A DNA stretch of 64,000 nucleotides from Paragordius varius (lineage: Eukaryota > Animalia > Nematomorpha). The position numbers were made by a program, and so were the translations under genes. Location: contig OZ176059.1 of the NCBI GenBank assembly GCA_964247055.1, positions 2,294,001 through 2,358,000 on the forward strand. The letters are read 5' to 3'. The notes beneath the pieces are model-generated. The model worked only from the letters and a program-made list of their open reading frames with translations, was not told where the DNA came from and searched no databases. Positions 41,578 to 44,500 of this stretch are shown here, piece by piece (within the stretch, counting starts at the first letter, position 1; each line of letters begins with the position of its first letter).

Positions 41578-44500
41578 TTAAGCTTTGGCATTAACAATCT
41601 TTTTGAAGTCAGGTTTAAGCGAAGCTCCCCCCACCAAAAAACCATCAACATCCGGTTTTTGAGCCAACTCACCGCAATTGGCTGGCGTGACGGATCCGCC
41701 ATACAGAATGCGGGTAGCACCCGCCACGTGATCAGACACGTGTTCCTTCAACCACGTGCGAATAGCGGCATGCACTTCTTGGGCCTGTTCGGGTGTAGCG
41801 GTTTTGCCCGTTCCAATGGCCCAAACCGGTTCATAAGCTATTACGACTTTGGACCAATCGTATATATATAAATAATATAAAGAGTATGTATTATATAAAT
41901 GGGCTAAATTATAAATATATATATATATATACCTTTTTCCAATATTAAACTCATTTTTTTTAAATTAACATCAACATATGTTAAAACAAACTCAACACTT
42001 TTCCTATCAAACTTAACAATTATTATTAAATAAGTTTCGATAATTTTTGAAATTTTACTAAAAAAAATTATCGGAATTTGCTTAAAAGGCATAAAAATTT
42101 GTTGTTAAAAATATTTATATCTAAAATGAATAACAACCTTAATCATTAATAGTAATATATGTGGGCGACGGCATATTGTTTTTAAGGAAAAAAAGTGAAA
42201 AGGATTTTTTATGTTGGGAACTTTTATTTAAATAATACGTAACAACTAAACATATAAATAAAGAGAATTAATGGTTTTCAAATATATATATATACCATTT
42301 GCACTTTAAGAGTGTCCTTGAACACTTCGAATTGGTCCTTGAACACTTCAACTTGGTACTTAAACACATCAAGTTGGCCCTTAAACATTTCAAGTTGGTC
42401 CTTAAAAATTTCAAGTTGGTCCTTTGACTTTTTTGTTTTTAACTTTTATCAATCAAATCGTATATCATTCATCTATTTTATCGTTTTTAACCTATTTTCT
42501 ATTATTGACCATAAATTTTAAATCAATATCATCTTTTAATCAATAAACCGTATATCTTTATTAATTTCCTAAAATTATTTCGCAATTTCTCTTTGACAAC
42601 AAAGTTAATAATTTTGTTAAATTAAAAATTAGCTTGAAATAAAAAAGTGGTTTTTGAATAAATTTTTTCATTTTTAAATCAATAAATATATATTAAATAA
42701 AGAAAATTAGGTTAAAAAATAATAAAATAAAAAAAATACATCCAAAAATTATGGTTAAATCAAAATTTAAAATTTTAAGGAACAACTTGAAGTGTTCAAG
42801 GACACTCTTGAAGTGAAAATGGTATATGTTGTTATTATATTATAAAATTAATCTAAAGTTAATTTGGAATTCAACGGGTCCTGACTGGTTATAAACGCAA
42901 TATTCAAAGTTATCGATCTATTAATACCACAAAATTGAAATAATAATAATAAAATTGCAACCTCAGAAATTAAAATAAACCAATAAAATTGCTTTTAATT
43001 AGTATTAATAACACTCTAAATGACAAACTTAGTCAATTAATCGATAATTTTATGAAGTGAAATGATATTTTTATAGATATGTCATGCCACTTTATAAACA
43101 TACGTAGTAAAAAATTTAAACTTTTCAATATGATAACAACCAGTCAAACCCAACTTCTAATTGGGAAAAAAAAGTTATATTTTACAAAAAATTTAGATAT
43201 ACCATTTGCACTTCAAGAGTGTCCTTGAACACTTTAAGTTAAGCCTTAAAACTTTTAAATTTTTATTTATCCATAATTTTTGGATGTATTTTTTTATTTG
43301 ATTATTTTTTAACCTAATTTTCTTAATTTATTATATATTTATTCATTTAAAAATAAAAAATTTTATTCAAAAACCACTTTTTTGTTTCAACCTAATTTTT
43401 TTCCAATTTAACAAAATTATTAACTTTTAAATGTTTTCAATTTAAAATTGTAAATAACAACTCAGAAAACTTATATATTTTTTTTAATTAGGTGTTAAAA
43501 TCTTATAAATATCCAAAATAATTTTAAGAAAATATAAAAAGATATACGGTTTCTCAATTATTAATAGTATTTAAAACTATGTTATATAATTGAAAATAGG
43601 TCAAAAACAATAAAATGGATGAATGATTTACGATTTGATTGATAAAAATTAAAAACATAACAAAAAAGTCAATGGACCAACTTGAAGTGTTTAAGGACCA
43701 ACTTGAAATGTTCAAGGACCAATTAGAAATGTTCATGAGGACACTCTTGAAATGCAAATGGAATATAATATCCAAAAAAAGAAAAAAAATGAATAAATAT
43801 AAAAATATTTATCTCAGGTTTGAGTTTTCCCTTGATAGCCATAAGTTGAGTAAAGCACACATTATTAGTTTGACCTTGTTCTCTTTCCTCCAACTTTTCA
43901 CCAATGCAAGCTATAACGCCCAACCCTTGTTGAATGGCATAAGCAATCTAATAAATGTTTTATATTGTAAAAAAAAATACTATTTTACATAAAATCAAGT
44001 TAATCAGGTTCAATTTAAACCAAAATAAAATTATGTGTTTTTTAAGAAATTAATAAAAATTATATCTGAAATTTTTTTAATTGATATTCAAAAAAAATGA
44101 TATATAAAAGAATCATGCATTTTTTGAAAGGTTTTTATCATTTATTTTTAACTTAAACTGAAATTGTTTTTTTAATATTATGTAATATAATATAGAAAAA
44201 GTGAAAACCATGCAATGAAGTAATTCATAATAATAATAATAGTAATAAAATGAATTAAATTACCCCCAAAAACACAGAATTCGTTTATGGATAAATTCAA
44301 TATGTTCAGGGGTTAATTCGAAGTATATTGTTATGTTTAAAATGTGAAAACCTCAAAAAGCGTAAAAATAAAAAAATACTCTTCAGATCAAATTTTTTGA
44401 TATAACCTATCGTTTTAAAATAAGGCATTGAATTGTAAATTGGCAACATTCCCAATTTAATAATAAGCCATTGTTCAAATTCACCCTCAAACAATTCTAA

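Follow-up and report, generated by a model that had tools for sequence, protein, structure and literature searches.

The triosephosphate isomerase (TPI) gene in the hairworm DNA analysed here, a stretch of 64,000 nucleotides referred to as the window, appears to be interrupted by an intron with AT as its first and AC as its last two bases. This raises the questions of whether the intron is a genuine part of a working gene, and by which of the two spliceosomes it would be removed. The majority of natural AT-AC introns are U12-type (PMC1557818, Table 1). U2-type AT-AC introns, defined by Sheth et al. as introns with a U2-type donor in which G1 is replaced by A, also occur naturally, and constitute 0.003-0.008% of introns in model species (PMC1557818).

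Structure and integrity of the TPI gene

The TPI gene, as read from the DNA, is located on the minus strand between positions 47174 and 41578 and is composed of four exons separated by three introns (Table 1). All exons match the TIM family of Pfam (PF00121), and the matched segments follow each other in order. The motifs containing the catalytic Lys, His, and Glu are present as NWK, GHSERR, and AYEPVW. The spliced model with the AT-AC junction encodes a protein of 249 amino acids. Exon 3 ends with the codons AAA CCT GAG at position 43813, intron 3 stretches from 43812 to 41860, and exon 4 continues with GAT TGG from position 41859. The coordinates and letters of intron 3 given in the preliminary description proved correct when the DNA was re-read.

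Table 1 Features of the TPI gene and of the neighboring ARPC5 gene. Slashes in sequences mark exon-intron boundaries.
Feature	Position	Strand	Description
TPI exon 1	47000-47174	-	Start codon ATG at 47174; last bases TTC G (phase 1); Pfam TIM 2-49, E 2e-8
TPI intron 1	45957-46999	-	1043 nt; GT-AG; G/GTATTT...CACATAG/CT
TPI exon 2	45799-45956	-	Contains GHSERR; Pfam TIM 58-108, E 3e-21
TPI intron 2	43948-45798	-	1851 nt; GT-AG, weak donor; AAA/GTTTTT...TTATTAG/AT
TPI exon 3	43813-43947	-	Ends ...KGKLKPE; Pfam TIM 110-151
TPI intron 3	41860-43812	-	1953 nt; AT-AC; phase 0; GAG/ATAAATATTT...TATATATAC/GAT
TPI exon 4	41578-41859	-	Runs to stop codon TAA; Pfam TIM 155-244, E 2e-38
MITE-like element	43197-43766		Lies within intron 3; has ATATACCATTTGCACTTCAAGAGTGTCCT as terminal inverted repeat and subterminal repeats of 21 nt; very high depth
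Second copy of the same MITE	42281-42836		In intron 3, in the opposite orientation to the first copy; arms (204, 91, and 75 nt) with 84-88% complementarity
Putative ARPC5 AT-AC intron	47826-47907	+	82 nt; AAG/ATAATTTTTT...CATTTATAC/TG (AAG/ATAATT...TTTATAC/TG)
ARPC5 intron 2	47981-48015	+	35 nt; GTATTT...TCTTAACATTAG
ARPC5 exon 3	48016-48192	+	Pfam P16-Arc 72-130

The G+C content of the window is about 22% (78% AT, calculated from all 64,000 nt), and that of the TPI exons is 35-51%. Exon 4 has a G+C content of 0.51 (0.47 at third codon positions), compared with 0.35-0.41 in exons 1-3 (0.29-0.35 at third positions). Directly past the TPI stop codon starts a highly repeated element (positions 41450-41645), with a read depth of about 278,000 and many loose ends at position 41540. 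In the public DNA run X1, the TPI exons have a read depth of about 180-190, which corresponds to the single-copy level, and the contigs of this run contain no second TPI copy that is at least 88% alike.

The terminal bases of intron 3 were examined for errors in the assembly or sequencing, that is, for a true letter G at 43812, at 41860, or at both. Contigs from run X1, with a depth of about 180x, span positions 41514-42311 and 43695-44506, and thus include both ends of the intron. They differ from the window at 0 positions and provide no alternative letters for the four terminal bases, although X1 may originate from the same sample as the assembly. Identical pieces were also found in DNA run X5, which comes from a separate study, at positions away from the two ends of the intron. 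The comparison with the X1 contigs upholds the AT and AC ends. Two mistakes at precisely both terminal bases are in themselves unlikely, and an error has almost no chance of being the explanation.

The TPI reading frame requires an AT-AC junction

We enumerated all in-frame, stop-free pairs of junctions from -60 to +90 nt around the donor and from -120 to +60 nt around the acceptor. Among the enumerated junctions, there is no GT-AG or GC-AG pair that preserves the conserved TPI protein. The resulting proteins were scored with a hidden Markov model (HMM) built on 102 full-length TPIs, which themselves score 281-445, with a median of 426. The AT-AC model reaches 390.6 bits, inside the range of real TPIs, and two GT-AG alternatives score about 362, i.e., approximately 28 bits less. 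Retention of intron 3 would stop the protein at 185 amino acids, ahead of the catalytic Glu. The alignment to the Pfam TIM model is collinear over the 43812/41860 junction: residue 43 of exon 3 corresponds to model position 151 and residue 2 of exon 4 to position 155, and the P, E, and D at the junction occupy positions 152-154. The lack of a canonical pair that keeps the protein, the lower scores of the GT-AG options, and the Pfam collinearity all agree with the earlier claim that the TPI frame needs an AT-AC intron at this place. A hidden micro-exon or a second copy of an exon was ruled out, since a tblastn search of the 64-kb window returned the four exons and no additional TPI-like segment.

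Other non-canonical sites close to the ends of intron 3 could also be used for splicing. AT donors at positions 43806 and 43800 are in frame and would insert two or four residues, respectively, resulting in HMM scores of 389.2 and 386.7, against 390.6 for the donor at 43812. A CC-AC pair with the donor at 43818 scores 395.6 and would restore the usual length of the TPI loop that is encoded at the junction. This loop is two residues longer in the AT-AC model than in the nearest animal homologs (P0151, P0270, and P0153), and has the same length as that of the TPI homolog P0021. Use of one of these nearby sites is nevertheless unlikely. The alternative AT donors (ATTTTT and ATATTT) match the U2-type donor more poorly than does ATAAAT preceded by AG, CC-AC is no known splice pair, and the collinearity with Pfam holds at 43812/41860 itself.

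Evidence for a working gene

The TPI locus could instead be a silent or recently disabled copy that has lost its splice sites, with a second, canonical TPI working elsewhere in the genome. The view presented here covers one 64-kb window, and the databases do not contain a protein of this TPI gene. The protein databases yielded no TPI from this species or from another hairworm, whether the search used exon 4 as the query, a profile composed of a scaffold TPI and the four exon pieces, or a comparison of exon 4 with fragments of 51-163 amino acids. The nearest matches to exon 4, with none nearer, are P0151, a JGI transcript (81%), and P0270, a nematode-like fragment (82%). No JGI metagenome contig contains an exact match to the spliced 30-mer. 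In addition, the contigs of two candidate RNA runs, X6 and X8, do not match any TPI exon. These runs, whose RNA status is guessed and from which conserved genes may have been filtered out, however, also lack the MITEs that are hugely abundant in the DNA runs. The absence of TPI from them therefore weighs little, and says little about the genome.

Several properties of the locus argue for a working gene, and make a silent copy quite unlikely. The four exons have remained open at 78% AT, their G+C content exceeds the 22% of the surroundings, and the protein has an HMM score within the normal range. Run X1 provides no second copy at the similarity given above. Furthermore, A at position +1 and C at position -1 co-occur in intron 3, which is the pairing that compensation predicts. 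We reason that a dead gene would not have a cause to acquire a C at exactly the last base of an intron, and that a second hit at this very base in a dead gene is unlikely.

Intron 3 resembles U2-type rather than U12-type AT-AC introns

The donor of intron 3, ATAAATAT, agrees with the U12 donor ATATCCTT at four of eight positions and has no TCC core. In the last 40 nt of the intron, the segment closest to the branch-site consensus TCCTTAAC is TCTTTATA, which agrees at five of eight positions. Five of eight is the mode of the scores of random 40-nt segments from the same 64-kb window (53%). Neither of the features that assign introns to the U12 type, the donor and a branch site some 10-20 nt upstream of the 3' end, is thus present, as the preliminary description had noted. 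A search with Rfam identified no snRNA or other known RNA family in the 64-kb window. A motif resembling the U12 donor, a(c/a)agtcat followed by [GA]TATCCTTT, was found at positions 823 (plus strand), 30832 (minus strand), and 21611 (minus strand), where it recurs within a repeat.

The exon-intron boundary GAG/ATAAAT has AG at positions -2 and -1, and T, A, A, and T at positions +2, +3, +4, and +6, and shares four of six positions with GTAAGT. Intron 3 therefore combines AT and AC termini with a donor that is U2-type apart from position +1, and lacks the U12 donor and branch site, as is characteristic of U2-type AT-AC introns. Four adjacent GT introns start with GTATTT, GTTTTT, GTATTT, and GTAGTG, and the 3' ends that were read for three of them are CATAG, ATTAG, and ATTAG.

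With a confidence slightly above even, based on the features of the DNA, we favor the interpretation that the TPI gene is functional and single-copy, and that its intron 3 is a true U2-type AT-AC intron removed by the major spliceosome. The intact gene, the lack of a canonical alternative, the U2-like donor, and the missing U12 marks support the U2-type assignment made in the preliminary description; that splicing takes place exactly at 43812/41860 in the mRNA, and by the major spliceosome, is what we infer from them. In the proposed mechanism, U1 would pair with AG/AUAAAU, a U2-type donor save for the A at +1, and the branch point and the AT- and pyrimidine-rich 3' region would be ordinary. 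Intron 3 would be removed by the major (U1/U2/U4/U5/U6) spliceosome, and the first and last intron bases would form, during the second step, the non-Watson-Crick pair A-C in place of G-G. The A-C terminal pair is an established compensation for G-G.

It is also conceivable that intron 3 is a real AT-AC intron removed by the minor, U12-dependent spliceosome, and that its U12 signals have decayed. Natural AT-AC introns are mostly U12-type (PMC1557818, Table 1), and the family of the neighboring ARPC5 gene includes human ARPC5L, which has a U12 intron (PMC3958305). We nevertheless consider removal by the minor spliceosome improbable, as the TCC core is missing from the donor, the branch-site match is no better than background, and the nearest ancestral TPI intron, known from Haliotis and Limulus, is a U2-type GT-AG intron at a different position. 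In the literature that was searched, we found no U12 intron in TPI and no account of hairworm splice sites.

Position and origin of intron 3

The TPI gene of the abalone Haliotis rufescens contains five introns and that of the horseshoe crab Limulus polyphemus six, all of them GT-AG. All three hairworm TPI introns are located at positions that are absent from these two genes. The ancestral 152-1 intron (AIA G/AT) is located approximately five codons upstream of intron 3, and hairworm intron 2 approximately five codons downstream of the ancestral 108-0 intron. The TPI gene of a filarial nematode has no intron at the 152-1 site, and the position of intron 3 differs from those of the TPI introns in all three animals. 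We considered whether a GTAAAA donor had been killed at the ancestral site, and ruled this out because the ancestral intron is in phase 1, one base off. Intron 3 may have been born as an AT-AC intron, or may have been a GT-AG intron that was altered by two substitutions.

Intron 3 contains two MITEs in opposite orientations (Table 1). The MITE family is very abundant, with a read depth of up to about 10^6, compared with 180 for single-copy sequence; it is characterized by 21-nt subterminal tandem repeats, and is also found at positions 10440-11530. The two opposed elements could pair over several hundred bases and give rise to a long hairpin in the pre-mRNA. The MITEs end 46 and 421 nt short of the splice sites of intron 3, which are located in single-copy sequence. 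The splice sites are therefore not transposon ends, and an origin of the splice sites from a transposon was ruled out.

The putative AT-AC intron of the neighboring ARPC5 gene

The ARPC5 gene adjoins TPI and is transcribed divergently from position 47626. Its putative exons 1 and 2 were set by comparison with the human sequence, and searches of Pfam and PDB with these two exons returned no match. As read from the DNA, ARPC5 apparently requires an AT-AC intron of 82 nt, the ends of which are like those of TPI intron 3, and which also lacks the U12 marks. Human ARPC5L contains a U12 intron (PMC3958305). If the ARPC5 intron is real, two such introns lie 4 kb apart, far above the frequency of 0.003-0.008% in model species (PMC1557818).

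A broader explanation is that the major spliceosome of the hairworm lineage tolerates A...C ends as a class, either in introns at new positions, as in TPI, or in ancestral U12 introns stripped of their marks, as in ARPC5. We regard such a general tolerance as doubtful. If it were true, the A...C kind would account for two of the seven introns that were read in the two adjacent genes.

Comparison with known introns and implications

TPI intron 3 shares AT-AC termini with U12-type AT-AC introns, but ATATCCTT is absent from it, and the match to TCCTTAAC is at chance level. It is similar to the U2-type (type II) AT-AC introns of human SCN4A and SCN5A, reportedly described by Wu and Krainer in 1997 and covered by the survey of Sheth et al. 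2006 (PMC1557818), in its AT and AC termini, in its donor of the form AG/ATAAnT, and in the absence of a U12 donor and branch site. Unlike those introns, the hairworm intron is located in a housekeeping glycolytic gene, and its dependence on the major spliceosome is deduced from its sequence. Non-canonical introns derived from MITEs are said to have been described in Fritillaria borealis by Henriet et al. in 2019. As in Fritillaria borealis, the animal has unusual intron sizes, and its non-GT-AG intron contains MITEs; in contrast to the MITE-derived introns, however, the TPI splice sites lie in single-copy sequence at the distances from the MITEs given above.

On the best available reading, TPI intron 3 adds one case to a kind of intron that is already known and rare, as each genome of the model species has just a few natural U2-type AT-AC introns. 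If this reading is true, the gene of an essential and highly expressed enzyme would provide a clean natural case of an efficient A-C terminal pair. Gene predictors would miss such an intron, so that annotations would list TPI as truncated or absent, which could contribute to the "gene loss" that is apparent in hairworms. Should the ARPC5 intron belong to the same kind, the hairworm lineage may be useful for studying how splice-site rules are relaxed.
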